Virus record (IMG/VR): IMGVR_UViG_3300027899_000001
Location: 124,001 to 188,000 of that record
Length of the DNA stretch: 64,000 nucleotides
Strand: one strand, 5' to 3'
Part shown: positions 2,347 to 58,618 of the stretch, one piece after another
Layout of the letters: every line of letters begins with the position of its first letter
Position numbering within the stretch: the first letter of the stretch is position 1
Translations under genes and position numbers: made by a program
The notes under the pieces: generated by a model
Databases searched by the model: none
What the model saw: the letters and a program-made list of their open reading frames with translations, nothing else
Told to the model about the DNA's origin: nothing

Positions 2347-2430
2347 GAATATATAATAAAAGATGGTTAGCTTGCTGAAACAAGCAATGGAAAGGTAAAT
2401 AACCACTGTCCCATCTTTAAATATTTATTC
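2347..2430 (+). ncRNA. Candidate structured 5' leader (three-way junction), copy 1
   Basis: AAAGATGG-TTA-GCTTG(CTGAAA)CAAGC-AA-TGG(12 nt)CCA-CTGTC-CCATCTTT; covaries with 54482-54573. Confidence 0.55.
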
Positions 2431-2454
2431 AATTAAAATAAAAGGTAAAAAATC

Positions 2455-23308: not shown

Positions 23309-23310
23309 AA

Positions 23311-23784: not shown

Positions 23785-24137
23785 TCTTCTATAAAAATTT
23801 TTTCATCTCCTGTAGAAAAATATTCATTATCTTCTTCACTAATAAACGCAAAATTTGAAGAGGTTTCAATAGATTTATTTGTAGTATCATCTGTAAAATG
23901 AAATCTAACAGATTTTACAGGAAATGTATAATTTTTTTCTGGACTATTCCATCCACCTTTATGAAATTTTCCTGATACTTTTTTTCCTTTGAATTGTGAT
24001 ATCCAATCTCTCCATTCTACATAAGCAACTCCTAAAATATCATGGTGTACTTTTCTAGGACTTACTCCCCCAATTCCCATGTCATGAACAGGATCTGATT
24101 CTTCGTCAAATTTCTCAAATATACCATGTGCTCTCAT
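23781..24137 (-). CDS. Tag family, 1 module
   Basis: IFEKFDEESDPVHDMGIG; payload resembles module 2 of 45560. Confidence 0.8.
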   Translation of the reverse strand: MRAHGIFEKFDEESDPVHDMGIGGVSPRKVHHDILGVAYVEWRDWISQFKGKKVSGKFHKGGWNSPEKNYTFPVKSVRFHFTDDTTNKSIETSSNFAFISEEDNEYFSTGDEKIFIEE

Positions 24138-28629: not shown

Positions 28630-29091
28630 TTAAGTTGTTACTTTTCCGCCTACGTTACATTTTTCACGCACCGTTTCTTCTGTAAATATTGTTTTATTAT
28701 CTTGACATAAAAAATCTCCTGATACTTCTTTTGGACAATAATCTAAAGATTTTAATCTATTTCCGCTACAATCAAAATATCCTTTAACGATCTCAGGACA
28801 TCCTCGTAATGTTGTCATTTTTGTTTCAGAACAATCAAATGATTTACTTTCTTTAAAATTAATATAATCTGGAAAGTTTCCATTCATTTTTACTCTTCCA
28901 AATTTTACATCGTCGTTTAATATTAATGTGTAATCTGAATTAATTTTAATATGTTTATTAAATGTAATTTCATCTACTTTAAATTTTGCAAACCACTTTT
29001 TAATTAATGTTGGTAATCCCACATTTAAATCCCATATAGGATCGCTTTCTTCTATAAATTTTTCATTAATATATTCTCTAACAATATTCAT
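28630..29091 (-). CDS. Tag family, LRR-like payload
   Basis: INEKFIEESDPIWDLNVG; FDCSGNRLKSLDYCPKEVSGDFLC. Confidence 0.8.
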   Translation of the reverse strand: MNIVREYINEKFIEESDPIWDLNVGLPTLIKKWFAKFKVDEITFNKHIKINSDYTLILNDDVKFGRVKMNGNFPDYINFKESKSFDCSETKMTTLRGCPEIVKGYFDCSGNRLKSLDYCPKEVSGDFLCQDNKTIFTEETVREKCNVGGKVTT

Positions 29092-29114
29092 TAAAGACTT
29101 TATTTTATATATTT

Positions 29115-29468
29115 CTATTTTTTCCTCATATGTTTTTTTACATAGTCAAATGAGTGTTGATGTCCACCTGTTATTAGATATAAAATTATATCGTTATCTT
29201 TTTTACCATCAATCGCCATTTTTAACACGCCCTCTTCTATTTTAGCTTTTTTATCATCTATTAAATATTTAACAAGTTTAAAATTATTGGCAGAAACTGC
29301 CATCCATAAAAAAGTTTCGTCTGTAAGTGCACTTATTGCTTTATCTGATAAGTGAAATCGTTCTTTAGCTAATTTTATAAGTTGGTTTTTCATTCCTATA
29401 TTCATATCTTCAATAGGATCTGATTCTTCTTTAAACTTTTCATTTATATGTTCCCTGACTAATTTCAT
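29115..29468 (-). CDS. Tag family, ankyrin-like payload
   Basis: INEKFKEESDPIEDMNIG; LWMAVSANNFKLVKYLID. Confidence 0.75.
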   Translation of the reverse strand: MKLVREHINEKFKEESDPIEDMNIGMKNQLIKLAKERFHLSDKAISALTDETFLWMAVSANNFKLVKYLIDDKKAKIEEGVLKMAIDGKKDNDIILYLITGGHQHSFDYVKKHMRKK

Positions 29469-30225
29469 ATTCTCACTTTATATTTTACAAATAAATCGTA
29501 ATATTGTTCAGGTATACTATAGTAACGATCTTCATCCATCATATCTTTAGGAATTGTCATCATATAAACTCCGGCTTCTGTAACTCCCCCATATTGCGCA
29601 TTACATCTATGTTTCATCATAGTAATGCTTCCTAATTGTCCAACATCATATTTATCAAATTTTACAAGAGTTTCTGTATTGAATCCATCTTTATAGTATT
29701 TTTTACCACCAACTGTAACAGGAATTTTATCCATAAATCCTATAAAAACATAAATATTATTTTCACTTTCTTCTTTTATTTGTTTTCTTGTTCTTCCTAA
29801 TTTTTTAATGTATATTTGTGCAGTAGATAAATCATGAGATCCTGTTTGATGGCAAGGATTATTCCAATTAATATCATCTAATCCATTTTAATAATTTCCA
29901 ATATTTCATCTTTATCTACATTGTTAGCAACAGCTTCATCTATAATATCTTTTATATCTTTTTTTGTATAATGCACATCTTTTAAAACTTGTGCCTTTTC
30001 TTTAGGAAAATGTTTTATTTGAACATCAATAAAGTCTTCTTTAGATTTACTTTTCCATCCTTTTTTGAAGAATGTATAATCATCACGGAAATCAACATCT
30101 TCTTCAGTTAATCCTATTTTCTTAAGATCAGCAAGAATTTGATTCTTTTTTCCTATATTTAAATCTTGAATCGGATCCGATTCTTCTTTAAATTTTTCGT
30201 TTATATGTTCTCTTACTTTTTTCAT
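29465..30225 (-). pseudogene. Tag family gene interrupted by a 1-nt frameshift near 29885 (track ORFs 29878..30225 and 29465..29734)
   Basis: The frame of the 29734 ORF stays open upstream to ATT AAA A|AT GGA; one extra A gives ...EIIKNGLDDINW...GFMDK. Confidence 0.65.
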
Positions 30226-31040
30226 TAATATGCGCTAAATCTTAATTTTCCTTTTATTTGACAATATTTTCTAACTGACGTACGAAAAGTGGGTTTACCG
30301 TGTGCTGCGTTATAAAAAATTACATAATCACCATCCACTATTTTTGGTCCATTTATTTTAATAGTTCTTAAATTATCAAAACAACAAGCAAATCTTCCAC
30401 GTATATAATTAAATTTTATATAACTGGGAAGCCTACTTAAATCTTCATAAGATATATCTATATCGTCCTTTGAATCTAACGTTAAATCATTATTTATTAT
30501 AAAATCTCCGCCTTCAACTACTTTTCGTTTTGTAAATTCTTTTATCCAATCATTAATTTGTCTTGGCAATCCTATACCCAAATCATAAATAGGATCTGAT
30601 TCCTCAACAAATTTTTCAGCTAATATATTTTTTTCTTTTAATTTTCGTATACCCATCAAAAGATCATTACACGTTTCATCTAATCCTCTTTTTCTAAGTT
30701 CTTTAAGCGTCTGTTTAACATCAGCGCCATTGTCTATTAAAAATTTGCATCCTTTCCAATTATGATCGTATGCACAATTACCTAAAAAATATCCATAAGA
30801 TTTAGAATGTGATGCGTTTATATCTACTAATTTAGAATCTAATAAAAATTTTGCAAAAATATATTCATTATTACTTAAGCATATTTCAAACATAGAATCG
30901 TAATGTTTACCATTTACTAACTCACGTCTGCCTTTTTTTATTATATAGTCTTCAATTTTAGCTAACATTCCTATACCAAGATCACGAATGGGATCTGATT
31001 CTTCAGCAAATTTTTCGTTTATATGTTCTTTTACAATCAT
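30225..31040 (-). CDS. Tag family polyprotein, 2 modules (ankyrin-like, LRR-like)
   Basis: Two tags; CKFLIDNGADV; LPSYIKFNYIRGRF. Confidence 0.8.
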   Translation of the reverse strand: MIVKEHINEKFAEESDPIRDLGIGMLAKIEDYIIKKGRRELVNGKHYDSMFEICLSNNEYIFAKFLLDSKLVDINASHSKSYGYFLGNCAYDHNWKGCKFLIDNGADVKQTLKELRKRGLDETCNDLLMGIRKLKEKNILAEKFVEESDPIYDLGIGLPRQINDWIKEFTKRKVVEGGDFIINNDLTLDSKDDIDISYEDLSRLPSYIKFNYIRGRFACCFDNLRTIKINGPKIVDGDYVIFYNAAHGKPTFRTSVRKYCQIKGKLRFSAY

Positions 31041-34198: not shown

Positions 34199-35284
34199 AT
34201 GAAAAAATTATTTATTGTTTTCGTAATGTTCTTTTTCTCAATTATTCTAATAGGACAAGATATGTCTGATTATGAAAGATATGTAATAGAAAAAGAAAAA
34301 GCAGAAATACGTGCAATGAAAGATACTGTAAGACCAGTAGAATCGGTACAGATTGTGCATGATACTGTATATGTAAAATCAGAAGAACAACCCATTGTTG
34401 TTAATTACTATGATGATGACCCCTTTTATTATAGTCATAATATAGGAATGTTTTATCATGGTGGATTTAATTATTATATGTATGCAGATCCTTATTATTG
34501 GTATATGAGTCCTTATGTAGGATTTGGGTGGGGATATGATAATTTCTATTTCGGTTTTGGATGGGGGTATCCTTATTATGGTTATGGCTATCCCTATTAT
34601 GGTTATGGATATCCTTATTATCCATATTATGGCTATCCTTATTATGGCTATGATTATGGACATTATGGACATGCTAATCATGGTTCAGGTATGTTAGGAT
34701 ATCATAGTTATGGTAGTTATCCTGGACACTCTAGTAGTGGATCTACAAACTATAAAAATTATAGTAGTGGAAAAGTTTATTCGTCTGGAATGTCTAATAA
34801 CACATTTTCAAGTAAATCTAGCACAAGAACTACACAGCAATCTACACAACAATCTACTAGAAGAGCTTCTAATTTTGCATTCAGTAAAAATAGTTACGCT
34901 AATAGATCAAGAACTGCTACACAGCCTGAAAATAAACCAGTGTATAATAAATCTAATAGATCATATACACCGAGTTACACACAACCTAGCACTCGTACAC
35001 GTCCGCAATATAATAATAGTAGAGCAACTACTCAACAAAGAACTATGAAGAATTCTTATCCTACACAATCATCAAGATCATATTCAACGCCTAAAAGTTC
35101 ATCGAGTTCTGGATCAAGAAATTTTTCAAATAGTAGAAGTTCAAATTATTCTGCACCGTCAAGAAGTTCATCACCTTCTTATTCAGCACCAAGAAGTTAC
35201 AGTAGTGGATCGTCTTTTAGTGGAGGAGGAAGTTCATCATCAAGATCTTCAGGATCAAGTGGTGGAAGTCATGGAAAAAGATAA
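34199..35284 (+). CDS. Secreted low-complexity Tyr/Gly- and Ser/Arg-rich protein, host-like
   Basis: Signal peptide; YPYYGYG repeats; SSG-rich tail. Confidence 0.7.
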   Translation: MKKLFIVFVMFFFSIILIGQDMSDYERYVIEKEKAEIRAMKDTVRPVESVQIVHDTVYVKSEEQPIVVNYYDDDPFYYSHNIGMFYHGGFNYYMYADPYYWYMSPYVGFGWGYDNFYFGFGWGYPYYGYGYPYYGYGYPYYPYYGYPYYGYDYGHYGHANHGSGMLGYHSYGSYPGHSSSGSTNYKNYSSGKVYSSGMSNNTFSSKSSTRTTQQSTQQSTRRASNFAFSKNSYANRSRTATQPENKPVYNKSNRSYTPSYTQPSTRTRPQYNNSRATTQQRTMKNSYPTQSSRSYSTPKSSSSSGSRNFSNSRSSNYSAPSRSSSPSYSAPRSYSSGSSFSGGGSSSSRSSGSSGGSHGKR

Positions 35285-37843: not shown

Positions 37844-38408
37844 GATTATGTTTTATTTTCTTTTTTCCAAAATTAGGATTATTTTTTCCCAATTTTGATA
37901 ATCTTATATTTTCTTTATGTTGTTCAGAAAATTTCATTCCCTTACGTCCTTCTGATATATGTTGTTTATGTAATTCGCTTTTTTCTTTTCCTAACATAAT
38001 ATCACTTACATTTTTCTTTTGTTCAATTGTATGATTTTTATCTTTCCAATAATGTGAATGATTGTCTTTAATTTTCTTTTTTGTTTCTTCTGATTTAGGA
38101 GTAATGGACATTAGTTCTTTAGCAAATTTATAATCCCTTGAAGAAACAACATAACCATTTACTTTACTAAATGTCATTCTAAAAAATGCTTCAACTATTT
38201 TATCATTTTTAGGATAAATAAATGTTAATAATTTATGACATAAATAGTGTTCTTTAGCTGTCAACAATACTTTATTCATATCATTATCTGGCCCTCCTAA
38301 ACATTTAGGCTTTATATGATGTGATTCATAATAAATTCCATTATGCTTAATTCTATTTTCGGATTTAGCCGTTTTAATTATATTATCGTATATTTTTTTA
38401 TGATTCAA
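37833..38408 (-). CDS. HNH homing endonuclease with NUMOD3 repeats
   Basis: ESHHIKPKCLGG.D...N.V.LTAKEH..CH. Confidence 0.85.
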   Translation of the reverse strand: MNHKKIYDNIIKTAKSENRIKHNGIYYESHHIKPKCLGGPDNDMNKVLLTAKEHYLCHKLLTFIYPKNDKIVEAFFRMTFSKVNGYVVSSRDYKFAKELMSITPKSEETKKKIKDNHSHYWKDKNHTIEQKKNVSDIMLGKEKSELHKQHISEGRKGMKFSEQHKENIRLSKLGKNNPNFGKKKIKHNHET

Positions 38409-38806
38409 TTTATTATTATGACTGGTTTATTTAATTTTTTAGCTTTACCTATAGTATCATTAGTTCCATTTGAGATATGTCCTGCTGGAATGAATGCTAA
38501 TAATAAATTACATTCTTCAGCAATAAAACTATTACGTTGAAAAAATTGACTGACATGATAAGGTTGTCCATAAAACTCTTTAGGTTTTCCTGAGTATATA
38601 TTCCACTCTGTATGAGCTGGATTATATTCTACATATTTCAATCCTTTTTCTAAAGCAACTATCTTTCCTAAGTAATCTGCACCCTTAGCACCACCACTTA
38701 TGATACATATATCATTTCCATATTTTTCTATACATTTGTCAACAGCAGTTTCAACAGATAATTTATCTGTATATAATCTTGAACCAACTATTCCTATTGT
38801 TATCAT
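38405..38806 (-). CDS. SLOG-family (DUF2493/YspA-like) protein
   Basis: IVGSR, ISGGAKGAD, RN, S.GT. Confidence 0.8.
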   Translation of the reverse strand: MITIGIVGSRLYTDKLSVETAVDKCIEKYGNDICIISGGAKGADYLGKIVALEKGLKYVEYNPAHTEWNIYSGKPKEFYGQPYHVSQFFQRNSFIAEECNLLLAFIPAGHISNGTNDTIGKAKKLNKPVIIIN

Positions 38807-39846: not shown

Positions 39847-40533
39847 TTATATATCGATCTTTTTTAATTTACATTTTTCTCCGTGCCATTTTTTATAATT
39901 ACCCGGGTCAAATTCTTTTTTACAATATTCACATATTTTTTTCATATTTCGTATGGGTGCCCACCCATCTTTTTTATACATTCCATTTTTATTTCCGCTA
40001 ATAGATTTTCCAATTTGTTTTTTTGTTTTTTCTGTATGAAATAATCCAATGTGCGAAAATTTCATCATATGAATAGTTTCATTAGTATAAACATTACATT
40101 TTCCTTTATTCCATGGAGAGTTTCCTTTCATATGTTCTTTCCATTCTTTAGAAAATTTTTTTCCTTTATTAATATTCTTATATTTTTTTCTTGTTTCTTC
40201 AGATATTGGCGTATTTTTTCGTAAATATACTGCATATTCATAATCTTTTGAAGAAACAAATTTTCCATCTTTTTTACTACATGCCATATAATGAAATGCA
40301 CAAGCAATATTTCTATTTCCTTTATAAATATATGTTAATAATTTATGACACACAAAATGTTCTCTTGCTGTTAATAGAACAAGATTATCTTGTTCGTTTG
40401 ATCCGCCTAAACACTTTGGAAGTATATGATGATTTTCATAATATACATAATTAGCATTATCTTTTTTTAATTTTTCTCTGTTTTCTGATTTTGCTTTTTG
40501 AATTATACTATTGTATGCTCTTTGATAATTCAT
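39847..40533 (-). CDS. HNH homing endonuclease with NUMOD3
   Basis: ENHHILPKCLGGSN...NLVLLTAREH; PWNKG. Confidence 0.85.
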   Translation of the reverse strand: MNYQRAYNSIIQKAKSENREKLKKDNANYVYYENHHILPKCLGGSNEQDNLVLLTAREHFVCHKLLTYIYKGNRNIACAFHYMACSKKDGKFVSSKDYEYAVYLRKNTPISEETRKKYKNINKGKKFSKEWKEHMKGNSPWNKGKCNVYTNETIHMMKFSHIGLFHTEKTKKQIGKSISGNKNGMYKKDGWAPIRNMKKICEYCKKEFDPGNYKKWHGEKCKLKKIDI

Positions 40534-40552
40534 ATCATTAATATTAATTTTA

Positions 40553-43662: not shown

Positions 43663-45563
43663 TTTCTGAATTTATATAAGTTTGAATCTTCTGGTAAAAA
43701 TTTACCTTGTAATCCTAATCTATCTTGATTTTTAATCCAATACTCCTGTAACATAGTTGGAATATCTGTTCTTGTCGAATCTAATATCTTTAAGTAAATA
43801 TCGTAAATCTTATATAACTCAGATTGCGAAAGGTTTTTAACAAGAAACTCTCGAAGTTTATAAAAGTTATTAAGTGTTTCTCGAGTTAAAGTATCTCTAA
43901 AATTATATAACTTATTTAATAATTCTATTACTTCAGTAGGATTAGTCGCATCATATTCTGTAGTTTCTGAATTATATACTCCAGAACCATGACGGAAAGT
44001 TCTTTTCTTATTTGCGAATAGCGCTACTATTAACTGAGTTCTATGTAATCCTTTCACATTACCCTCATAAGATTCTGAGTGATAACTAAAAGTTAACCAA
44101 TCCATGTTTCCAATATTCACATCTATCTGAACATCTTTACCAACTTTCTGTCCTTGTTCATTATATTGTGGAAAACAACAGAATATAGTTCCAGCGCCAG
44201 AGTTCTTAGGATCAGCGAGTAACCCTTTAGCGATTAGTTTATCTACAATTATTTTCACCATTGAACCTAACTTAAGTTGTTTTTCAGACGCTGAGCGAGC
44301 GCGTTTCTTCTTAAGTTCGTATACTTCTGTGAATTCTTCAGGACTTATTCCCCAATCATCTAATTTAACTTCGTTATTCTCAAATATAGTATCTTCACTA
44401 AGCGCTAAATCTATATCTCCTGAAATATCTTTCTTTCCCGCAGATCCGAGTAATTTAAATTCGAAATCAACGTTTGGAAAAATAAAATTAAGTTTCTTTG
44501 TGAATCTATCCATAGTTGGTGGAATATCTTCTCGTTTAATAGGTCCTGTACCATCAAAAATATTACCCCCTTCAAATAATCGAGGAGTAAAAGATTCTTT
44601 AATATTTTGTGTATTTTCTTTAATTGCGCGAGAAATTTTATTATATACGCATTTTTCATTTTCACAATAATACGCCCAATAACTACTATCTTCACGAATT
44701 TCATATTTAAATCTTCTAAATGATGAATCATCATATTCTCCTACTATATTTTCTATGTTATATTTTACTCCCTTTACTTTATAATAAGCGCTCTTTTTAT
44801 GTATAGAAAATTCTTCCTTTTTTGGAATATAAATTTTACCTCCAAATTTTTGTTTAAGTTTATATAGAGCTGCGTGTAGAGGATTTCCTATACCTAAATC
44901 ATGAATAGGATCTGATTCTTGTGTAAATTTCTCGTTTACTGATTCTGTAATAACGTTTTTAGTCATATCCCAAATAGTTTCTACTATCGATTCTCTTATT
45001 CCGGGATAATTGGTTTTAAAGTTTCCATAATCATCGTTTAAAATATCTTGACGTAATATAGTTCCAGATATTATTTCTCCTTCATTTTCATCTGTACGAC
45101 CTTCATATCTAATTGGAGATATATCTATCGGAAGTTCTATAACTTTAACATCTGGGTGTTTTAGATGATAATATTTTCCGGTTTCAAGATGATCTTTAAC
45201 GAATTTAGTAACTCTGCCATAATCAGTATCTTTTTCTGAACCACCCATCGCATAAACTCCCGGTTGCGCTGCTTCTATAAACTTATACGCTGCCAACACA
45301 GGAACTTTAACTTCTTCTACACTAACATTATGTAAATCTTCTAAAAGTAATAAAGCGATCTGTACAGCCTCTACTGGAGTTATTCCATTACGAACGCCTG
45401 AACCTATAAAAATTCTAACTTCTTTAACTTTCGGATTTTCTACATAGCGCCTAATCATATTTACATGACCTATGTGCATAGGTTTAAAACTTCCAGGTAA
45501 TAACACGGTTATTCCTTCGTTTATATTTTCGTTTAACCAACTTATATATGATGAAAATTTCAT
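43659..45563 (-). CDS. Three-part protein: HxGH cytidylyltransferase-like, tagged module, pol-beta nucleotidyltransferase
   Basis: PGSFKPMHIGH; ESVNEKFTQESDPIHDLGIG; LGSAGKKDISGDIDL...VQID. Confidence 0.75.
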   Translation of the reverse strand: MKFSSYISWLNENINEGITVLLPGSFKPMHIGHVNMIRRYVENPKVKEVRIFIGSGVRNGITPVEAVQIALLLLEDLHNVSVEEVKVPVLAAYKFIEAAQPGVYAMGGSEKDTDYGRVTKFVKDHLETGKYYHLKHPDVKVIELPIDISPIRYEGRTDENEGEIISGTILRQDILNDDYGNFKTNYPGIRESIVETIWDMTKNVITESVNEKFTQESDPIHDLGIGNPLHAALYKLKQKFGGKIYIPKKEEFSIHKKSAYYKVKGVKYNIENIVGEYDDSSFRRFKYEIREDSSYWAYYCENEKCVYNKISRAIKENTQNIKESFTPRLFEGGNIFDGTGPIKREDIPPTMDRFTKKLNFIFPNVDFEFKLLGSAGKKDISGDIDLALSEDTIFENNEVKLDDWGISPEEFTEVYELKKKRARSASEKQLKLGSMVKIIVDKLIAKGLLADPKNSGAGTIFCCFPQYNEQGQKVGKDVQIDVNIGNMDWLTFSYHSESYEGNVKGLHRTQLIVALFANKKRTFRHGSGVYNSETTEYDATNPTEVIELLNKLYNFRDTLTRETLNNFYKLREFLVKNLSQSELYKIYDIYLKILDSTRTDIPTMLQEYWIKNQDRLGLQGKFLPEDSNLYKFRK

Positions 45564-46207
45564 TTAGTTATATAATATTTTTCGTATTTTTTTATAGTAT
45601 GTTTAATTCCAATAGTATCTATCAAGATTACTTCTGTTCCCATTCCGTAACTAGCTGAATCTGCTATTTTAAATGTTAGAGATTTTTTACTTCCTTCAAA
45701 AACTCCAGTTATTGTTTTTCCCGGCAAACCTTTTATAAAATATAACCACTCTTCATAACCATCATCTGCATTTATAATACTTCTAATAGTGTTTTCAGAA
45801 AGTTCATAAAAATTTACAACATCTACTCCTATTCCCATACTACTAACAGGATCAAATTCTTCTTCAAATTTTTCGTTAACTTTTTTATATAATTTATCTT
45901 TAACAAGTTGTTTAAATTCATCAACCCATAATGTATCAACTCGCATACCTCGTATTGTTACATATTTGCGTATAAATGCCATTATTTGCACATAATAATC
46001 ATGATTTATAACACATTCACCCGGATCTTTTAAAATATCTTCTATTTTTTCAAGATGTAATAATATTGCCGCATTTTTATATAACCATTTATGAAGATCT
46101 AGATAATTATTAAAATCTCTTTTCATATATAATCCTATGCCCATATCTCTTATAGGATCAGAATCTTCTACAAATTTCTCGTTAATATGTTCTCTAACTA
46201 CTTTCAT
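45560..46207 (-). CDS. Tag family polyprotein, 2 modules
   Basis: INEKFVEDSDPIRDMGIG; VNEKFEEEFDPVSSMGIG. Confidence 0.8.
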   Translation of the reverse strand: MKVVREHINEKFVEDSDPIRDMGIGLYMKRDFNNYLDLHKWLYKNAAILLHLEKIEDILKDPGECVINHDYYVQIMAFIRKYVTIRGMRVDTLWVDEFKQLVKDKLYKKVNEKFEEEFDPVSSMGIGVDVVNFYELSENTIRSIINADDGYEEWLYFIKGLPGKTITGVFEGSKKSLTFKIADSASYGMGTEVILIDTIGIKHTIKKYEKYYITK

Positions 46208-46644
46208 TAAAATTTTCTCTCATGTAATTTTGTATGATACGCCATTTGAATATCACCTAAATAATAAATATAATCACTGCGTGACGCTTCTGTTAGTGTA
46301 GCAATTTTTCCAAATTCTGTAATAAATCCTTTAAATAATTCTTTTTTATTATTATATAATTTTCTTATTTTTAATTGTTTTTTATTATTTACAGTAAATT
46401 GTTTTATTTCTTCTTTCATAAATCCTTCAAATTCACCTTCATCACCTATATAATACACATCTGATAAAGGAAGTTCAAAAAAATTATGTATTAATTTCTT
46501 TTCATGTGGACTTAAAACTAATGATCTGTTAACACCATGTTTTTCAATTTTTGGTGCGATACTGTATATTCCTATACCCATATCATGGATAGGATCAGAT
46601 TCTTCTTTAAATACTTCGTTAATATATTCTCTTACTAATTTCAT
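46207..46644 (-). CDS. Tag family, 1 module
   Basis: INEVFKEESDPIHDMGIG. Confidence 0.8.
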   Translation of the reverse strand: MKLVREYINEVFKEESDPIHDMGIGIYSIAPKIEKHGVNRSLVLSPHEKKLIHNFFELPLSDVYYIGDEGEFEGFMKEEIKQFTVNNKKQLKIRKLYNNKKELFKGFITEFGKIATLTEASRSDYIYYLGDIQMAYHTKLHERKF

Positions 46645-47474
46645 TTTTGTAGTGGAGCATTTAATTTCATTGATGTAATTACATCGCCTTTTACTTCACA
46701 ACGGCTTCTAATCTCTTCTTCTGTAAATTCTACATCGTTACCAACTATTACATAATTTCCACCAATATATTTTGGCATTCCTTCTAAAGATTTCAAACGA
46801 CATGTATAAACTGCAAAATTTCCACCAACGTGTCTAGGAAAACCTTTTAATGTTGTTATTTCTCCTAAAATTATTACGAATCCTAATTTTGTTTTATTAA
46901 ATTGAATATAATCTGGAAAATCTTGAAAATTTTTGCCTATAGTATAAATTTCATCATAAAGGTCAATAGTTCCGTCTTGTCTTATTTTATATCTTTTTAT
47001 CTCATGTTCTTTTAACCATTTCTTAATTTTAGGAATTACACCAATACCTAAGTCTTGTACAGGATCAGAATCTTCTATAAATTTTTCATTTACAGATTCT
47101 TTTAATTTGTCTATTTCTTCTGGTTTAGGAATCTCAAAATGTTCTAAAAACTTTTTTCCTGATAATGTTAAATATTCATCTCCGACAAACACAAAATCTG
47201 GGAACCTGAACCATTTTGGAAATTTCTCATATGTAACTAAATTTAATTTAATTTTTCCTTTAGGTGTAAAATTTATTTCTTTAATTACACAATAAGAATC
47301 AGGAGTAATATGAAAATTAGAAACAGGATATTGAGGAACTCTAGGTTTTATACTTTTTTTACATCTAATAATATCACCGCGCTTTAGTTTATGAAATATA
47401 CCAATTCCTAAATCATAAATAGGATCGCTATCTTCAACAAATACTTCATTAATATATTCTCGTACTATATTCAT
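46641..47474 (-). CDS. Tag family polyprotein, 2 modules (second LRR-like)
   Basis: Two tags; ITTLKGFP..V.G, LKSLEGMP. Confidence 0.8.
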   Translation of the reverse strand: MNIVREYINEVFVEDSDPIYDLGIGIFHKLKRGDIIRCKKSIKPRVPQYPVSNFHITPDSYCVIKEINFTPKGKIKLNLVTYEKFPKWFRFPDFVFVGDEYLTLSGKKFLEHFEIPKPEEIDKLKESVNEKFIEDSDPVQDLGIGVIPKIKKWLKEHEIKRYKIRQDGTIDLYDEIYTIGKNFQDFPDYIQFNKTKLGFVIILGEITTLKGFPRHVGGNFAVYTCRLKSLEGMPKYIGGNYVIVGNDVEFTEEEIRSRCEVKGDVITSMKLNAPLQK

Positions 47475-47947
47475 GTAGTTCTTATCTTATCTTTTGCTAT
47501 TTTACAATATTTCTGTACGTATTCTCTTGTAAATCTTTTTTTATTACCACCACACATAAATTTTTTGCCAATAATTTCTGGACAATATTCTAATGAAGTT
47601 AATTTATTAAATCTGCAATCAAAATCGCCAGTTACTATTTTAGGACATCCCCTAAGAGTTGTCATATTACAATTACATATTATAAATTCTCCATCTATTT
47701 TATTAAAATTTATATACTCTGGAAAATTTCCGCAATTATCTGGAAGCGCAGTAAATCCTTGGCAATCTATAGTGCCATCGTTATTTATAGTGTAATTTCT
47801 AATTCCATCACACTGATTATTATTAGATATTCTATTTATCATTCCTATCCATTTTTCAATTTTGTGTATTATTCCTATACCCATATCTTGTATAGGATCT
47901 GATTCTTCTGAAAATTTTTCGTTGATATGTTCTCGGACTATGTTCAA
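47471..47947 (-). CDS. Tag family, LRR-like payload
   Basis: INEKFSEESDPIQDMGIG; MTTLRGCPKIVTGDFDC. Confidence 0.8.
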   Translation of the reverse strand: MNIVREHINEKFSEESDPIQDMGIGIIHKIEKWIGMINRISNNNQCDGIRNYTINNDGTIDCQGFTALPDNCGNFPEYINFNKIDGEFIICNCNMTTLRGCPKIVTGDFDCRFNKLTSLEYCPEIIGKKFMCGGNKKRFTREYVQKYCKIAKDKIRTT

Positions 47948-47957
47948 AGCGATTTTA

Positions 47958-49901: not shown

Positions 49902-50552
49902 TTATGATTTATATGCAACTTTAAGCGCTTTATACTTTAATTTTTGTTCTTCTTTAATTTTATATCTTTGCATTCCTATTTTAGTGCCTTCTTTTATTCT
50001 TTCTATTTGTTCTAGTGTGCGTTTTTTACCTCTGTGTGAATCGTTTAATTTTTTTTGATGTTCTTCACTTCGTTTTCTTCCTTTCATGTATTCACTATGT
50101 TTTTTATTTTGTTCTTCTGAATGAATTTTTCCTTTATGGGATTTTCTATTTTTTTCAACTGTTTCTAAAGAATGTTTTCTACCTAAATTAATTATACTTA
50201 TTTTTTTTCTTGTTTCTTCTGACACTGGAATTAATGATTTTAATTCTCTAGCATATGCATAATCTTTTGATGATATATTATGTTTTCCAGATTTATCCCA
50301 AGTCATTCTACAAAATGCATTTGCTATTTTTCTATTTCTTTTATAAATATATGTTAACAATTTATGACATAGATAATGTTCTCTAGCAGTTAATAAAACT
50401 AAATTTTCTTCGTCATTACTTCCACCTAAACATTTAGGTAATATATGATGTTTTTCGTAATAAACATAATTTGCATTATCTTTTTTTAATTTAATTCTAT
50501 TTTCAGATTTTGTTTTCTGAATTATAGAATCATAAACTTTTTGATGATTCAT
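49902..50552 (-). CDS. HNH homing endonuclease with NUMOD3 repeats
   Basis: EKHHILPKCLGGSND; SEETRKKIS, GRKHS. Confidence 0.85.
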   Translation of the reverse strand: MNHQKVYDSIIQKTKSENRIKLKKDNANYVYYEKHHILPKCLGGSNDEENLVLLTAREHYLCHKLLTYIYKRNRKIANAFCRMTWDKSGKHNISSKDYAYARELKSLIPVSEETRKKISIINLGRKHSLETVEKNRKSHKGKIHSEEQNKKHSEYMKGRKRSEEHQKKLNDSHRGKKRTLEQIERIKEGTKIGMQRYKIKEEQKLKYKALKVAYKS

Positions 50553-50554
50553 TT

Positions 50555-50881
50555 TTATTTATTATATAATATTTTAAGAGCCTTGTTAAATCTAGATGTA
50601 AACTCAAATCCTTCATCGCCTCTTACAATAAATCCCAATTTTAAATAAAGAGCTATCATAGTAGCAGAAGTTTCTTTAACTTCATCTATACAGTCTTTTA
50701 TTTCTATATCACTTAATATAGGAGTTCCTCCTGTATCTATCTTTTTATTTATTCTTCCTTTAATACTGATATATAACAATTCTCTTGTCATTAACGGCAG
50801 AGTTAAATAAGTATCAAAATCCCCATTTTTAATTCTTTGTCCAATTTTATTTAAGAACACATCATTATTTACATTTTTCAT
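50555..50881 (-). CDS. Hypothetical protein
   Basis: 108-aa ORF. Confidence 0.6.
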   Translation of the reverse strand: MKNVNNDVFLNKIGQRIKNGDFDTYLTLPLMTRELLYISIKGRINKKIDTGGTPILSDIEIKDCIDEVKETSATMIALYLKLGFIVRGDEGFEFTSRFNKALKILYNK

Positions 50882-50973: not shown

Positions 50974-52164
50974 ATGAAAATAGTACGAGAACATATAAAT
51001 GAAAAATTTTCTGAAGAATCTGATCCTGTACATGATTTAGGCATAGGCATAATACATGCTATTGAAAAATTCTGTGATAAACACAGAAAAGTGATAATGC
51101 CTACTTATGAGTGTGATGAAAAAGATATTATGCTATTAATATGTGTTGATAGAAAAAAGCATGATTATGTAGAAGATTTATTAAAATTAGGAGCTAATGT
51201 ACATACAAGCGCTGGAATACATCTGGGTAATGAAGATCTACCTGTTAGATACGCAATATGGAACAATGATTATGAAATGACAGAATTATTATTAAAATAT
51301 GGAGCATCTATAGAAAACGCATTTGATGAGGATGTTCTTGAACTTATAGAAACTGGAGATTATATGGGTGGAAAAAAAAGTAAAGAATTAATAGACTTAG
51401 TAAAACAACATTTAGAAAAACCAGTAAATGAAAAATTTTCTGAAGAATCAGATCCTATATATGATTTAGGAATAGGAATAATTACAAAACTTAGAAAATT
51501 TTTAAAAGATCATCACTGCGATAATTTTGATTTACGTTATAAACCTGATCAAGATAAAGCTCTTTCTTTATGTGTTAAAACCAATACTCCAGATTTTATA
51601 CAGTATTTAGTATCATTGGGAGCAGACCCTAATTTTAGTCCTGAAGATAAAGATTTTGGGTTATATTTAATGAATGCTGCATACGTAGAAGATTGGGAAG
51701 TTTGTAAAGCTTTAGTTAATAGCGGAGCAGATTTAGATAAAACTATAACATGTTCGATAGATAGACAGACTCCGATAACTTTAAAAAATCTTGAAAGATT
51801 TAAAGAAATGATAGAAAATCCTATAAATGAAAAATTTTCAGAAAAATCAGATCCTATTAAAGATATGGGTATAGGTTTATATACAATAAGAAATTTTGAA
51901 AATTTAAATGAAATAGCAGAATTTATCATATCTATAATGCCATATATTTTAAAAACACATAAAATTCCTGAAGATATTATACATTCTGAGGCTTTTATAC
52001 TAAAACAAAAATATATTAAACCTCTTGATAATTATATTTATAAATATATTAGATTAAATAATGAAGAAATAACATCAGCAATAGATTATAAATTATTTGA
52101 AAATATGTTAAGTATTTTAGCAAAAAGAGGCTTTAAATATCCTAAAACTAAATTCATACATTAA
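50974..52164 (+). CDS. Tag family polyprotein, 3 modules (ankyrin, ankyrin, RxF-class), inverted orientation
   Basis: Three tags; LLKLGANV, LLKYGA, LVSLGADPN. Confidence 0.82.
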   Translation: MKIVREHINEKFSEESDPVHDLGIGIIHAIEKFCDKHRKVIMPTYECDEKDIMLLICVDRKKHDYVEDLLKLGANVHTSAGIHLGNEDLPVRYAIWNNDYEMTELLLKYGASIENAFDEDVLELIETGDYMGGKKSKELIDLVKQHLEKPVNEKFSEESDPIYDLGIGIITKLRKFLKDHHCDNFDLRYKPDQDKALSLCVKTNTPDFIQYLVSLGADPNFSPEDKDFGLYLMNAAYVEDWEVCKALVNSGADLDKTITCSIDRQTPITLKNLERFKEMIENPINEKFSEKSDPIKDMGIGLYTIRNFENLNEIAEFIISIMPYILKTHKIPEDIIHSEAFILKQKYIKPLDNYIYKYIRLNNEEITSAIDYKLFENMLSILAKRGFKYPKTKFIH

Positions 52165-52888: not shown

Positions 52889-53667
52889 TTATCTTTAAGT
52901 GTTAATGCGTGAAAATCATGATAGTCAGGATAATGATAAGTAAGTATGTTAACTAATCTTACTGCACATTTTTTACGTATATCTTCAAATGTAAAATCAG
53001 GAATAATATCAGTATAAATAGTTAAAGTTCCTCCTACATAATCAGGCAAATATTTTAATTGGTTTTTAGTTTTAAATACACAAGAAAATTGTCCTGTTAT
53101 TTTTCCAAATTTAATATAAGACGGCAAGTTAGTATTTTCTAAAGAAGAAAAATTTACATATTCTGCATTTATCTTTAAATCTTTACTTATATTTTCGCCT
53201 TTAATAAAACCACGTTTTCTTAATTCTGTTACAAAGGAATCAATTTTTTGCCTAATGCCTATACCCATATCATGAATAGGATCAGAATCTTCTGTAAAGG
53301 CTTCATTTAATGGATCTACATTGATATAAAAATGTTCTTTAAGAACTTCTGCAACTATTTTTCTAGCTTTTAACATATCTTTTTTTGTGTCATTTATATG
53401 AGAAAATGCTCGGCATGAATTATTGAAAGCAATTTGAACTGGTATATTTCTAATAGCATCTGAAATAGTAAATGACGCTATAGCAGCATATTTATGTTTA
53501 TAATAAAAAGAATATTTAGAAAAAAATTTTTCTACAAACTCTTCGGGATTTTTATTTATTTTTTCATTTTCAATTTTCCAAAAATTTATTAAACCTATTC
53601 CCAAATCTTTTATTGGATCGCTTTCTTCTGTGAAAATTTCGTTTATATGTTCTCTAACTAATCTCAT
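52885..53667 (-). CDS. Tag family polyprotein, 2 modules
   Basis: INEIFTEESDPIKDLGIG; LNEAFTEDSDPIHDMGIG. Confidence 0.8.
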   Translation of the reverse strand: MRLVREHINEIFTEESDPIKDLGIGLINFWKIENEKINKNPEEFVEKFFSKYSFYYKHKYAAIASFTISDAIRNIPVQIAFNNSCRAFSHINDTKKDMLKARKIVAEVLKEHFYINVDPLNEAFTEDSDPIHDMGIGIRQKIDSFVTELRKRGFIKGENISKDLKINAEYVNFSSLENTNLPSYIKFGKITGQFSCVFKTKNQLKYLPDYVGGTLTIYTDIIPDFTFEDIRKKCAVRLVNILTYHYPDYHDFHALTLKDK

Positions 53668-54440
53668 GCGTATTTTCCCATATCATTTGCTAACATATCA
53701 ACTAAATCACTTACGTATCTTGGGCTTTTATTATACTCATTTTTATATTTTCTTCTAAGATAATTTTTAATATCATCGTCGTATATCATACTTTCTGCTG
53801 AATCATGAATATAAGAATATGCATCATCATCGTCATCAATACTATGTTTTATATCAATGACAGCGCCCTTTATCATTTTTTCATATTCTCGTTTGGTCAT
53901 TATCTTTTCTTTTTCTCGATAGCCTCTTTGTCTTTGTTTAGGAATTATCTTTCCATTTTGTTCTAACCAATCTGAAGCAACTAATTTCTTTTTTCCAGAT
54001 TTATCAATAACTGTTACAAGATCGTATTTATAACTATGGTCTTCTACCTTAATTATATGGTAATGATTATCTTTTGTTTCCACATTCATTCCTTTTCGGA
54101 ACTTACTTACTTCATTAGCTTCGTTTAAAGATTCTTTAAGAGCTCCTTTATCTTGAAATATTTTTTCTAATGCAAGATAATGAACAGATCCTTTAGGAAC
54201 ATATCCTTCATAACCAAAATCATCAGTTAAATCATTATTTTTACAATGAGCAAACCAAAATTCATCTTGACTTTTTATACATCCCCTTCCTGCATCAGGA
54301 ATCCATACTACATTCTTTTTTATAGGATGTTTTTCTCCAAATTGTTCAAGTGCTTTTATTTTATCACGAAGATCAAACCAATAAGTTACACTTCGATAAT
54401 CTTTTGCTTTTAATTTTTCGTTAAGTAATTTTGCTCTCAT
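53664..54440 (-). CDS. Hypothetical protein with MRAKLLNE leader and internal ESLNE
   Basis: Leader resembles those of the tag family but lacks the DPxxD tag. Confidence 0.6.
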   Translation of the reverse strand: MRAKLLNEKLKAKDYRSVTYWFDLRDKIKALEQFGEKHPIKKNVVWIPDAGRGCIKSQDEFWFAHCKNNDLTDDFGYEGYVPKGSVHYLALEKIFQDKGALKESLNEANEVSKFRKGMNVETKDNHYHIIKVEDHSYKYDLVTVIDKSGKKKLVASDWLEQNGKIIPKQRQRGYREKEKIMTKREYEKMIKGAVIDIKHSIDDDDDAYSYIHDSAESMIYDDDIKNYLRRKYKNEYNKSPRYVSDLVDMLANDMGKYA

Positions 54441-54481
54441 TAAAAATAATAATTTATTTTATATATTTAATAAAAAATATA

Positions 54482-54573
54482 GATATATAAAATATAGTAG
54501 TTAGATTAATGTTTCAGCATTAATCAACATTCGGATAGAATAAAATGCTGTCCTACTATAATCTATATATTTT
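54482..54573 (+). ncRNA. Candidate structured 5' leader (three-way junction), copy 2
   Basis: TATAGTAG-TTA-GATTAATG(TTTCAG)CATTAATC-AA-CATT(12 nt)AATG-CTGTC-CTACTATA. Confidence 0.55.
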
Positions 54574-54596
54574 AATTAAAATAAAGGATAGAAATA

Positions 54597-55538
54597 ATGA
54601 AAGAATTTAGAAAAACAAAAGATGACCTTTTTATATGTGAAGAATGTGAACGAACATTTGCATCTTATCAAGGTTTACGAAATCATATTAGGCATTCACA
54701 TAAACTAATATCTCAAAAAATATATTATGATATTTACAGAAAAGAAGAGAACGAAGATAAATGTAAAATTTGTAATAATGATGCGCCTTTTATATCATTA
54801 TTTTATGGATACAAACCTGGGTGTTGTAAAAAACATATAAATTTATATTCCTATAAAAAGAAATCTCAAAAAATGAAAATTAAATATGGAATAGAAAATC
54901 AATTTCAAAGAGCTGATATAAAAGAAAAAATGAAAATAACAAATATTAAAAAATTAAATGTAGAATATCCTTCACAATCAAAAGAAGTAGTATTAAAAAT
55001 CAAAAAAACAAAGAAAGAAAAATATAATGATGAAAATTATAATAATACTGAAAAACGAAATAAAACTACACAAAATAAGTATGGATATAGTACTGTATTA
55101 AAAGACAAACAAAAAATGAAAATTTCTATACTTAATAAATATAATGTAGAAAATGTTATGCAATGTCCTGAAATTTATAAAAAACAACAAATGTCTGGCT
55201 TTTTATCTAATAATTATAGAAATACTGATATTTATTATAGAGGGTCATATGAATTAGATTTCTTAGAAACATTTTATGATAAATATCCTGATATTATTAA
55301 TGGGCCTGTAATTAAATATAAATTTAAAGGAAAAAATAGAATATACTTTCCAGATTTTTACATACCTTCTTTAAATCTTATAATTGAGATAAAAAGTTTG
55401 TATTATTATAATAAATATAAAGATAAGTGTTACGTAAAAGAACGCGCAGTAATTAATAACGGTTATAGCTATAGTTTAATTTTAAATAAAAATTATAAAA
55501 ATTTTAACGAGCGAGAGCATAGCCCATTGCAGCAGTAA
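54597..55538 (+). CDS. Homing-endonuclease-like protein (Zn finger plus PD-(D/E)XK)
   Basis: Paralog of 2455..3255; YFPDFYIPSLNLIIEIKS. Confidence 0.75.
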   Translation: MKEFRKTKDDLFICEECERTFASYQGLRNHIRHSHKLISQKIYYDIYRKEENEDKCKICNNDAPFISLFYGYKPGCCKKHINLYSYKKKSQKMKIKYGIENQFQRADIKEKMKITNIKKLNVEYPSQSKEVVLKIKKTKKEKYNDENYNNTEKRNKTTQNKYGYSTVLKDKQKMKISILNKYNVENVMQCPEIYKKQQMSGFLSNNYRNTDIYYRGSYELDFLETFYDKYPDIINGPVIKYKFKGKNRIYFPDFYIPSLNLIIEIKSLYYYNKYKDKCYVKERAVINNGYSYSLILNKNYKNFNEREHSPLQQ

Positions 55539-55830: not shown

Positions 55831-56357
55831 GATAATATATTTTTATTTATATATTCTTTATTTAGCGTCCATATAATTGTTTTTTTAATGCTATTTGTTT
55901 TTTTTAATTCTTTTTGTAATTGTTTTATTTTATCTGATAAATATCTTTCACTTCCATAACGTATTATGTCTAATTCTCTAATTATTGGTTTTAAATTATT
56001 TGGAAGAGAATAAAGTGGACCCGCAGTATCATCAGCCTGAGATATTACAAACCAACCTATTTCTGGTTTTAAATTAGTTAATGAATGTTCTGCTATTATG
56101 TCTTCTGCTGCTTCAACAGATTCTGCGAAATAAATATCTATGTCTTCAAAATCAGAATCCCAACAAGTTATATAGTAAATATCATTAGAATCTCCTGATG
56201 TCATAGATATTTTATCATAATCAAATTCTGTATCATATCTTTTATCAATTATATGTATAAATTGTTCTATAATTTCTTCGGGTTTAATACCAATGCCCAT
56301 ATCTTTGATAGGATCTGATTCTTCTTTAAATTTTTCAGTTATATATTGTGCTTTCAT
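55800..56357 (-). CDS. Tag family, 1 module
   Basis: ITEKFKEESDPIKDMGIG. Confidence 0.8.
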   Translation of the reverse strand: MKAQYITEKFKEESDPIKDMGIGIKPEEIIEQFIHIIDKRYDTEFDYDKISMTSGDSNDIYYITCWDSDFEDIDIYFAESVEAAEDIIAEHSLTNLKPEIGWFVISQADDTAGPLYSLPNNLKPIIRELDIIRYGSERYLSDKIKQLQKELKKTNSIKKTIIWTLNKEYINKNILSWKNFRHITI

Positions 56358-56941: not shown

Positions 56942-56991
56942 TTTAAAACTTTTTTAATATATATCTATATAATACTATAATCTATATATTT

Positions 56992-58137
56992 ATGAAGAAT
57001 CCGATTAAAAATCAAAACAACGAATTTATATGTGAAGAATGTAATAAAACATATATCAAATTAGATGGATTATCCAAACATATTGGTGTTATTCATCAAA
57101 ATAAAAAAGAATATTACGACAAATATCTAAAAGAAGAAAATGAAGATATTTGTCCCATATGTGGAAATAAAAATCCATATTTAAATAGATGGGACAGAGG
57201 ATATAAGAAAACCTGTTCAATAAAATGTGCTAATATATTAAGACATCAATTACAAGCAAACACACTATTAAAAAAATTTGGTGTAGAAAATGTTATGCAA
57301 ATAAAAGAAGTTAGAGAAAAATATGAAAATACATGTTTTGAAAAATATGGTGTTAAAAATGCTATAGAAAATAAAGATGTTAGAGAAAAATCAAAACAAA
57401 CTTGTTTAAAACATTTTGGAGTTGAAAATCCATTGCAATCATTAGAAATACAGACACGAGGAAGAAAAACAATGAAAGAAAAATATGGAGCCGAATATAC
57501 TTGGCAATCTGAATCCCTTATGAATAAAGTTAAAGAAATAAATATAAAAAAATATGGGGTTGAGTGCCCTTCTCAAAACGAAAAAATAAAAGAAAAAATT
57601 AAAAAAACAACAAAGGAAACCACAGGATATGAATATAATTTTCAAAATAAAGAATTAATGATAAATTCTATGTTAAATAAATATGGTGTTGAAAATATAT
57701 CTCAATTAGAAGAAACACAAAATAAAATAATAAAAACAAATCTAGAAAAATATGGAGTTACTCACCATTTTCAAAACAAAGAGATTTTTTTAAATGCTCA
57801 GAAAAAAGCATTTAAAGTGTTTCAATTTAAAAATACAAATATTTGGTATCAAGGTTCTTATGAATTAGATTTTATTAATAAATATTATGATAAATTTCCA
57901 GATATACAAAGAGGCCCATCAATTCCATATAAATTAAATAATAAAAATAGAATATATCATGCTGATTTTTTTATTCCATCATTAAATTTAGTTATCGAAT
58001 GTAAAAGTAGTTATTATTATAAAAGATTTAAAAAACAAGATATTGCAAAGAAAAAAGCCACTATTTCTAATGGCTTCAAATATATTATGATAACTAATAA
58101 AAAATATAATAAATTCATTAAATTATATTGCGCTTAA
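56992..58137 (+). CDS. Homing-endonuclease-like protein (Zn finger, many KYGVEN repeats, PD-(D/E)XK)
   Basis: Paralog of 2455 and 54597; YHADFFIPSLNLVIECKS. Confidence 0.75.
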   Translation: MKNPIKNQNNEFICEECNKTYIKLDGLSKHIGVIHQNKKEYYDKYLKEENEDICPICGNKNPYLNRWDRGYKKTCSIKCANILRHQLQANTLLKKFGVENVMQIKEVREKYENTCFEKYGVKNAIENKDVREKSKQTCLKHFGVENPLQSLEIQTRGRKTMKEKYGAEYTWQSESLMNKVKEINIKKYGVECPSQNEKIKEKIKKTTKETTGYEYNFQNKELMINSMLNKYGVENISQLEETQNKIIKTNLEKYGVTHHFQNKEIFLNAQKKAFKVFQFKNTNIWYQGSYELDFINKYYDKFPDIQRGPSIPYKLNNKNRIYHADFFIPSLNLVIECKSSYYYKRFKKQDIAKKKATISNGFKYIMITNKKYNKFIKLYCA

Positions 58138-58147
58138 TATATTCATG

Positions 58148-58618
58148 TTACATTTCTTTATTTATTTTATACAATTCTCTTCCGTGAGCTTTAAGTTTCT
58201 TTGCCAATTGTCTACTTGTAAACTCTTCAGCGCCATTATCTTTTAATAATTTAATCATATCTTCATCTTCATTACTTTTTGCAGTGTTTAGGATGCCATA
58301 GTGTATAGAAAGATGTAAATTTGCTCCTTTTTCTATTAGCCATTTTGCTAATTCTAAATTTTTATTAAGAACTACCCACTCTATAACTGATCCTCTATAC
58401 GCATTTATATCTGCGCCGTTTTCAATTAAATATTTTACATAATCTTCTTTATTTTGTTTAGCACAGTATAATAAACAAGTATCAATATCAACATAATCTG
58501 ATTTTGTAAGTTTTTTTACAAATTCTTTTATTTTATGCATCATTCCAATATCCATGTCTTTTATTGGATCCGATTCTTCTTTAAACTTTTCGTTTATATA
58601 TTCTCTAACTAATTTCAT
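58148..58618 (-). CDS. Tag family, ankyrin payload
   Basis: INEKFKEESDPIKDMDIG; VKYLIENGADIN, WLIEKGAN. Confidence 0.82.
   Translation of the reverse strand: MKLVREYINEKFKEESDPIKDMDIGMMHKIKEFVKKLTKSDYVDIDTCLLYCAKQNKEDYVKYLIENGADINAYRGSVIEWVVLNKNLELAKWLIEKGANLHLSIHYGILNTAKSNEDEDMIKLLKDNGAEEFTSRQLAKKLKAHGRELYKINKEM

Follow-up and report, generated by a model that had tools for sequence, protein, structure and literature searches.

The region at positions 54480-54596 is one copy of a previously undescribed, portable leader placed in front of homing-endonuclease genes (HEGs) in an uncultivated T4/Lak-like megaphage, in which a predicted Y-shaped fold carries in one loop, in nearly every copy, a co-varying repeat of the few bases just upstream of the start codon of the gene. 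Seven copies were found in this genome and 67 distinct copies overall in public viral and metagenome contigs, all of them upstream of free-standing HEGs of three unrelated families. The leader is a cassette of HEGs in a lineage of uncultivated, AT-rich T4/Lak-like megaphages. From 5' to 3', the leader consists of a phage promoter-like box, a three-way junction of 60 to 70 nt, an AT-rich linker, and the start region. The junction comprises the closing stem P1 (7-9 bp) and the two hairpins P2 and P3, joined by the single-stranded connectors J1/2, J2/3, and J3/1. The features of the two copies compared first, upstream of the genes at 54597 (copy 2) and 2455 (copy 1), are given in Table 1.

The sequence statements of the first-pass annotation all proved correct, namely, the P2 loop CTGAAA of copy 1 being the exact reverse complement of TTTCAG in copy 2, the repetition of the pre-ATG sequence in the P3 loop of each copy, and the 3' remnant of the leader before a third paralog. 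Its interpretation, either a switch based on CTGTCC or DNA-level hairpin inversion, was only partly supported. The class of the downstream genes, the promoter-like box, and the existence of a large family had been missed.

Table 1 Features of the leader copies and adjacent genes in the analyzed window (64,000 nucleotides)
Position	Strand	Feature	Supporting observation
54480-54494	+	Copy 2, phage promoter-like motif (TAGATATATAAAATA); its TATA-like box ends 9 nt before J1/2	Core of the motif (GAATATATAA) is repeated in the genome and lies at the 5' edge of P1 in essentially all 67 copies
54493-54560	+	Copy 2, predicted three-way junction: P1 54493-54500 paired with 54553-54560; J1/2 UUA 54501-54503; P2 54504-54525 (loop TTTCAG 54512-54517); J2/3 AA 54526-54527; P3 54528-54547 (loop 54532-54543); J3/1 CUGUC 54548-54552 (CTGTC(C) 54548-54553)	Fold z-score of -4.7
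54533-54540	+	Copy 2, first copy of the 8-mer GGATAGAA, in the P3 loop	Identical to 54586-54593
54561-54585	+	Copy 2, AT-rich linker (TCTATATATT ... TAAAATAA); its 5' part is the imperfect mirror image of the promoter motif	Alignments; TATATATT present in 6 of the 7 own-genome copies
54586-54596	+	Copy 2, second copy of GGATAGAA (54586-54593, 4 nt before the ATG at 54597) plus AAT, directly before the start codon	
54597-55538	+	Homing-endonuclease-like gene (C2H2 zinc finger plus DUF7487), antisense to both neighboring genes	Pfam DUF7487 at 6.5e-24, plus zf-C2H2
2347-2454	+	Copy 1 of the leader: promoter-like motif 2347-2360; junction 2359-2418 (P1 2359-2366 paired with 2411-2418; P2 loop CTGAAA 2375-2380; P3 loop 2391-2402; CUGUC 2406-2410); AAAGGTAAA in the P3 loop (2391-2399) and again at 2441-2449	Covariance-model hit of 93.9 bits
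2455-3255	+	Homing-endonuclease-like gene (DUF7487) downstream of copy 1, antisense to its neighbors	
56974-56991	+	Remnant of 18 nt identical to the P1 3' strand plus linker start of copy 2 (54555-54572), fused directly to the ATG of the third DUF7487 paralog (56992-58137); junction and 8-mer absent	The 18-mer ACTATAATCTATATATTT occurs exactly twice; no covariance-model hit

Genomic setting

The window corresponds to bases 124001-188000 of a 405,016-bp IMG/VR virus record with 80-bp terminal repeats and 28.8% G+C. A giant-virus origin, suggested by the AT-richness and the lack of a Shine-Dalgarno signal, was rejected, since no NCLDV capsid was found, whereas T4 Gp23-type capsid genes are present. 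The PolB is closest, at 36% identity, to those of Prevotella Lak megaphages and an uncultured 462-kb phage. Upstream of the ORFs, G is depleted and no Shine-Dalgarno signal was detected, which fits a Bacteroidota-type host by inference only. The only public run holding the DNA is a freshwater DNA metagenome.

Family of leaders and covariation of the fold

Further copies were gathered by a pattern scan of IMG/VR with the 3' half of the element, a scan of metagenome contigs, and a second IMG/VR scan with the 5' half only. All hits were filtered with a covariance model built from 21 copies, giving 67 distinct sequences. The sample is partly biased by the search words used in the first two scans, and the 5'-half scan and the own-genome copies served as controls. 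One chance pattern hit on a contig labeled human-gut metagenome (L112; L numbers designate individual loci) was left out of all analyses.

RNAalifold recovered P1, P2, and P3 with 11 of 13 pairs covarying. Over 57 distinct sequences, the three helices paired in 97.2% of cells, compared to 69.8% in column shuffles (0 of 500 shuffles as high) and 25-56% with slid partners; 12 of 13 pairs showed double changes and the covariation score was 0.771 against 0.226. The connectors UUA (rarely UAA or UGA), AA, and CUGUC, and the closing G-C pair, are essentially invariant.

No Rfam family (including HEARO/omega RNA, hammerhead, twister, pistol, hatchet, and riboswitches) was hit at gathering threshold over the whole window, and in a permissive scan of 54440-54640 the best E value was about 1. 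The connector lengths of 3/2/5 nt do not fit the hammerhead core of 7/3/1. No tRNA or tmRNA gene was detected by ARAGORN in the window, and blastn of the leader against 50,697 deposited phage genomes returned no match.

Downstream genes and their orientation

Every copy sits directly upstream of a free-standing homing-endonuclease-type ORF, either C2H2 zinc finger plus DUF7487 with a weak TnsA/PvuRts1I-like nuclease signature, HNH plus NUMOD3, or SegE-like GIY-YIG plus NUMOD3. The leader recombines freely with the ORF type, as copy 2 (DUF7487) and the copy at genome position 28.9 kb (HNH) have leaders 88% identical that diverge at the ATG. A Logan contig that starts inside the element is explained by the repeat shared with this 28.9-kb copy, so the break is not a transcript end. 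The genome has about a dozen paralogs of each of the DUF7487 and HNH families, and those without the leader either follow a bare promoter motif or lie in-line with their neighbors. In 22 of 28 cases with both flanks known, the leader-bearing gene is antisense to both neighbors, and only 3 are co-oriented with their neighbors; in this genome the figure is 6 of 7.

Promoter-like box and its mirror image

The leader is headed by GAATATATAA(A/T)A..., the core of which occurs 55 times in the genome, 43 of them within 120 nt upstream of ORFs, peaking 16-30 nt before the ATG. In leaderless HEG paralogs it abuts the ATG, and genes other than HEGs use the bare motif. The TATA-like box ends 8-9 nt before J1/2 in 57 of 61 copies, and the most distant copy, L223, has an exact TATAAATA at that place. 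Scans for sigma-70-type promoters and simple terminators gave nothing above shuffle expectation and no terminator, respectively. The 3' flank of P1 (TTTATTTATATATT-type) is the mirror image of the promoter motif, perfect over 17-19 bp in several copies but imperfect in copy 1 and in the copy-2 sub-lineage. The frequency of TATATATT in the scanned copies is biased by its use as a search word, although the own-genome copies were found without that constraint.

In T4-family phages, RNA hairpins with embedded late promoters control the endonucleases I-TevI, I-TevII, I-TevIII, segB, and Aeh1 mobE (PMC2988022). Both there and here a structured leader lies directly upstream of a phage HEG, a phage promoter box (here a promoter-like motif) overlaps the 5' arm of the main helix, and the presumed purpose is tight limitation of nuclease synthesis. 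Here, the fold is a three-way junction with nearly invariant connectors rather than a simple hairpin, one leader family serves three nuclease families, and a loop carries the co-varying copy of the start region. Sequestration of the ribosome-binding site or start codon was not found, since the start region, about 30 nt beyond P1, is unpaired in predicted folds of both long and short transcripts, with P1 ending about 35 nt before the ATG.

The PeSL and PmSL composite promoter-terminator cassettes of T4-type phages (PMC2839356, PMC4122927) are likewise short, conserved, repeated promoter-plus-stem-loop modules that travel with gene cassettes and can mediate modular shuffling; here the same leader is joined to different ORF types exactly at the ATG. 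PeSLs use sigma-70-like or Mot-box promoters with a plain stem-loop terminator and precede many kinds of ORFs of hyperplastic regions, whereas this element has a different promoter motif, a branched fold, and the loop copy of the start region, and is restricted to HEGs.

Identity between the P3 loop and the start region

In nearly every copy, the 7-11 nt that begin the P3 loop equal the 7-11 nt lying between TAAAATAA and AAUC-AUG, at about -12 to -5 of the start codon. Whether this identity would survive a larger alignment had been set as a test beforehand, and it did. About 50 different motif pairs were found (e.g., AAGGTTAA, AGAGTTAA, ACTGTTA, ATCGGT, AAGATTAA, AAGGACGT, TAATAGGGA, GATAGGAA, AGTTTGGA, and GGGTAGA), and closely related leaders differ at the same letters in both places. 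Position-wise identity is 66-100% over eight positions and falls to background on the 3' side. The longest common word averages 7.43 nt for a copy against its own start region and 4.59 nt for mismatched pairs, and is 7 nt or more in 79% against 7% of cases; none of 1000 permutations reached the observed value. The start-to-start spacing is 43-53 nt, with a mode of 49. All nine additional copies selected by their 5' half alone obey the rule, including the divergent L223, which lacks the usual linker.

The motif occurs nowhere else in the cassette in either orientation. The absence of a third copy at the cassette ends speaks against a target-site-duplication or att-like origin, and target-site duplication is also incompatible with P1/P3 covariation across the supposed insertion boundary. 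A Shine-Dalgarno reading was rejected, because the genome shows no such signal and, although many motifs contain GG, ACTGTTA, ATCGGT, AAGATTA, and AAAGTTT were counted as exceptions. The motif class does not follow the nuclease family, which rules out an operator for the encoded nuclease. The I-TevI operator that mimics its homing site (PMC2988022) is similar in that a sequence near the promoter or start of the HEG duplicates another functional site, but it is a DNA site read by the encoded protein.

Programmed bypass between matched sites was also considered, in which a translating ribosome, or a polymerase, would take off at the first copy and land on the second. In T4 gene 60, located next to the mobA endonuclease gene, the gap is 50 nt, which resembles the spacing observed here, and the first copy lies in a hairpin. 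However, no conserved upstream ORF reads into the first copy, start codons are absent or inconsistent, frames after the second copy hit stops, and eight to eleven identical letters are far more than a codon match needs, so this reading was rejected as very improbable. A possible upstream ORF starting from the (A/C/G)UG next to P3 is not conserved, as its stop positions vary with linker length.

CUGUCC pairing

According to the first-pass annotation, the invariant CUGUCC would pair alternately with the motif in the P3 loop or with its copy at the start region, thereby opening or closing the initiation site. Five or more contiguous pairs are possible with the loop in 29 of 67 copies and with the start region in 20 of 67, compared to about 12% in shuffles, and 6-bp matches occur in 14 of 67 loops and 12 of 67 start regions, against about 1% of shuffles. 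These cases are concentrated in the GGAYAG-type lineage; in its GGAUAG-type members, including copy 2, CUGUCC forms 6 bp with either copy (one G-U pair had been noted for GGATAG of copy 2) and minimum-free-energy folds use that pairing. In 25 of 67 loops and 33 of 67 start regions only 3 bp are possible, and the last C of CUGUCC is already paired in P1. Because CUGUCC never varies while the motif does, it cannot drive the covariation. A scan for any same-strand segment between -60 and +110 that stays complementary to the 8-mer found none, and no complement of the motif was found in the leader, ORF, or flanks. The switch may operate in the copy-2 sub-lineage, but it does not explain the family and is unlikely as a general mechanism.

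Inversion of the P2 loop

Among copies with identical P2 stems, the loops fall into two mirror classes. L098 (TTTGAG) and L143 (CTCAAA) are exact reverse complements, copy 2 (TTTCAG) is one change from the reverse complement of L024 (CAGAAA), L099 and L124 mirror L158 and L095, and L026 mirrors L157. In these pairs the direct edit distance is 4-6 and the reverse-complement distance is 0-1. DNA-level inversion of the P2 loop, as proposed in the first-pass annotation, is thus supported and recurrent, but it looks like a tolerated mutation rather than a regulated switch, and it shows that the P2 loop sequence is not strand-constrained. Small hairpin-loop inversions, in which the loop is replaced by its reverse complement between unchanged inverted-repeat stems, are recurrent and homoplasious in AT-rich noncoding DNA, classically in plastid genomes, and arise by a mutational process that needs the stem as an inverted repeat; here they occur within a conserved functional element of phage genomes and affect only P2. 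P3 and the whole core bounded by P1 are never inverted in the 67 copies, although P1 is longer than P2, and orientation relative to the gene is therefore under selection.

A DNA-level origin of the repeated motif is a further, rather unlikely possibility. The junction would form in single-stranded or cruciform DNA, and the two 8-mers would be direct repeats kept identical by templated copying (short-patch conversion or template switching) or would serve replication slippage deleting the 49-bp segment that holds the P1 3' strand, so that no RNA partner would be needed. The P2-loop inversions prove that hairpin-mediated template switching operates on this element, the helices are almost purely Watson-Crick as expected for DNA, identity is near-perfect with very few intermediates, and the first repeat sits in an exposed loop. 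On the other hand, the flanks of the two copies share little homology to guide conversion, no deletion product or core-inverted copy was seen among the 67, and second-order selection for deletability is weak. The invariant connectors and the strict orientation relative to the gene point instead to a strand-specific, transcribed function.

Inferred mode of action

The analysis establishes a portable, HEG-specific leader with a conserved branched fold and a co-varying duplicate of the start region, whereas its mode of action, including any transcription of the opposite strand, the positions of transcript starts, and a role in governing HEG expression after transcription, is inferred from sequence alone. 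Identity maintained through dozens of changes means that either both copies match a third nucleic acid that changes with them or a copying mechanism keeps them alike. Because no partner was found on the same strand and the encoded proteins are excluded, the only automatically co-varying complement is the opposite strand.

The preferred but tentative explanation, with a probability of about 0.4, is sense/antisense control. Transcription of the junction in both directions is plausible, since most cassettes lie antisense within host gene arrays, the 3' flank mirrors the promoter, and in several loci the start codon of the neighbor is only 12-20 nt beyond the leader, so that its mRNA must cross the junction. 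G-U pairs are rare on either strand (10 G-U-type and 15 A-C-type among 740 cells), so both strands can fold, and an opposite-strand RNA would take the same Y shape, although these counts do not single out a strand. The P3 loop of an opposite-strand RNA would, by construction, display the exact complement of the -12 to -5 region in nearly all of the 67 copies, and pairing there would block initiation or trigger decay, each cassette carrying a private antisense address. In this view, P2-loop flips play no part in the mechanism. Most of the core mismatches between loop and start region are A in the loop against G at the start (c7/L017, L050, L027, and L092), which would be U-G wobbles in such a duplex, and L092 looks like an intermediate between GGATAGA and the doubly changed GGGTAGA of L098; however, this bias rests on about 7 mismatches that are not independent. 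Read-through antisense RNA already contains the perfect complement of the start region, and the need for a second copy in a loop thus rests on the extra assumption that only the folded junction is stable or kinetically active. The invariant connectors are not explained by antisense pairing, nor by the other models, and suggest a defined tertiary fold or a bound factor.

Antisense control of this type is exemplified by IS10 RNA-OUT/RNA-IN and by the P1/P7 c4 antisense RNA with covarying loop-target pairs. The shared features would be face-to-face promoters, a folded RNA whose loop addresses the start region of the element's own gene, and specificity set by a few covarying loop letters. In those systems complementarity is direct, either from overlap or from complement on the same strand, whereas here identity is seen on one strand and complementarity would arise only through opposite-strand transcription.

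Alternatively, although this appears unlikely, the junction could act in cis in the HEG mRNA as a mimic or timing device, with P3 as a decoy copy of the initiation region competing for initiating ribosomes or for an RNA-binding factor. The promoter box embedded in the P1 5' strand would make phage-promoter transcripts lack P1, while read-through transcripts would form it, following the I-TevI/segB/mobE logic of restricting nuclease synthesis to one transcript class. The constant spacing of the box is consistent with this, because by the T4 late-promoter rule (start about 6-7 nt downstream), if it applies, transcripts would keep only 2-4 nt of the P1 5' strand. Promoters inside regulatory hairpins are a documented theme for T4-family HEGs (PMC2988022), in the copy-2 sub-lineage the mimic extends to an AUG at the right spacing, paired within P3, and the conserved junction nucleotides suggest a specific RNA fold or ligand. 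However, a decoy needs affinity rather than letter-for-letter identity, yet the copies track each other through non-purine-rich motifs such as ACTGTTA, ATCGGT, and AAGATTA. The independence of the motifs from the nuclease family excludes the encoded protein as the partner, the start region is not sequestered in predicted folds, and in about 80% of cases there is no same-strand gene upstream to supply read-through transcripts.

A more far-reaching and doubtful version of the antisense model is that the junction is a two-faced regulatory gene read from both strands. The sense face would be the HEG leader and the antisense face a small folded RNA, or the 5' leader of the mRNA of the neighboring host gene, with the P3 loop as a private anti-start address. 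Each selfish nuclease cassette would then carry its own orthogonal silencer, and this genome alone has four address classes among its seven cassettes. Identity on one strand would be the genomic footprint of an intermolecular loop-to-start pairing, a design that has not been described for homing endonucleases.

Homing endonucleases are the commonest selfish genes of large phages, and how they are kept harmless is known from only a handful of T4 examples. The leader described here is a new, well-supported structured element that is shared by three unrelated nuclease families and swaps between them as a module, and it also provides a clean natural record of recurrent hairpin-loop inversion in phage DNA. 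Its hallmark, a hairpin loop that keeps identity with the start region of the gene through dozens of changes, is an unusual covariation for identity that points to an unseen partner and gives a directly testable handle on how mobile nucleases are governed in megaphages whose hosts probably do not use Shine-Dalgarno pairing.

Additional features of the window and of related loci

A very large paralog family is represented in the window by more than 25 copies (coordinates of this and the following features are listed in the table below), all of which share an N-terminal motif of about 25 residues of the type (I)NEKF.EESDPI.DMGIG, and in the single ORF of this group on the plus strand the motif is present three times, fused to ankyrin repeats with a weak hit to DUF5928. 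Three paralogous ORFs of about 215 to 228 aa are 66 to 79% identical at the DNA level over their 5′ parts (repeat families D11, D14, D18, and D19). A 661-aa ORF is made largely of acidic D/E-rich repeats with a 15-nt period (repeat family D1), and tandem 21-nt repeats encode a tyrosine/glycine-rich stretch of the GYGYPYY type inside ORF 34199-35284.

The large subunit of ribonucleotide reductase is interrupted by an intein (Pfam Intein_splicing, residues 321 to 603), which is another selfish element in the same region. The ORF for the family-B DNA polymerase, whose closest relatives are Lak megaphages at 36% identity, stops after 491 aa and covers the exonuclease domain and only the first third of the polymerase domain. 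The rest was not located, and this may be a split polymerase gene, as in some T4-like Aeromonas phages, where a seg gene splits gene 43.

Features observed in the window, the whole genome, and metagenomic loci (L, loci of the leader collection)
Location	Coordinates	Strand	Feature
Window	12200-14470, 22290-24120, 26550-27370, 28990-31040, 44870-47950, 53240-53667, 56270-56357, 58520-58618	-	Large paralog family with shared N-terminal motif
Window	50974-52164	+	Member of the same family with three motifs and ankyrin repeats
Window	14522-17986	-	Ribonucleotide reductase large subunit with intein
Window	18056-19531	-	Family-B DNA polymerase ORF, possibly split
Window	24214-26199	-	ORF with acidic D/E-rich repeats
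Window	34463-34673	+	Tandem 21-nt repeats
Window	38071-38411, 40181-40536, 50200-50555	-	Three paralogous ORFs
Whole genome (G000:C1); L002; L017	L002 1611-2348; L017 315-1067		Homing-endonuclease genes
Window; L012, L105, and L115	54451-54469 (window)	- (window)	Phage promoter motif of the divergent neighbor of copy 2 (window); neighboring gene close to the leader
L037 / L139	11344-11452 / 1537-1645		Weak leader family member without an endonuclease gene

Homing-endonuclease genes and the surroundings of the leader

The whole genome carries about 12 DUF7487-type, about 13 HNH-type, and at least one GIY-YIG homing-endonuclease gene, and the HNH and GIY-YIG enzymes share NUMOD3 DNA-binding motifs. 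All seven leader-bearing copies are on the plus strand, whereas 75% of genes are on the minus strand. A weak member of the leader family, with a score of 54.8 bits, was found in which the junction and linker are followed not by an endonuclease gene but by a GC-rich hairpin with a T-run, and it may be an orphan leader left after gene loss or a stand-alone small RNA gene.

The divergent neighbor of copy 2 of the leader has its own copy of the phage promoter motif between its ATG and the leader. In several metagenomic loci, the neighbor's ATG lies only 12 to 20 nt from the leader. Its mRNA must therefore begin inside or beyond the cassette and would carry the antisense junction in its 5′ leader.
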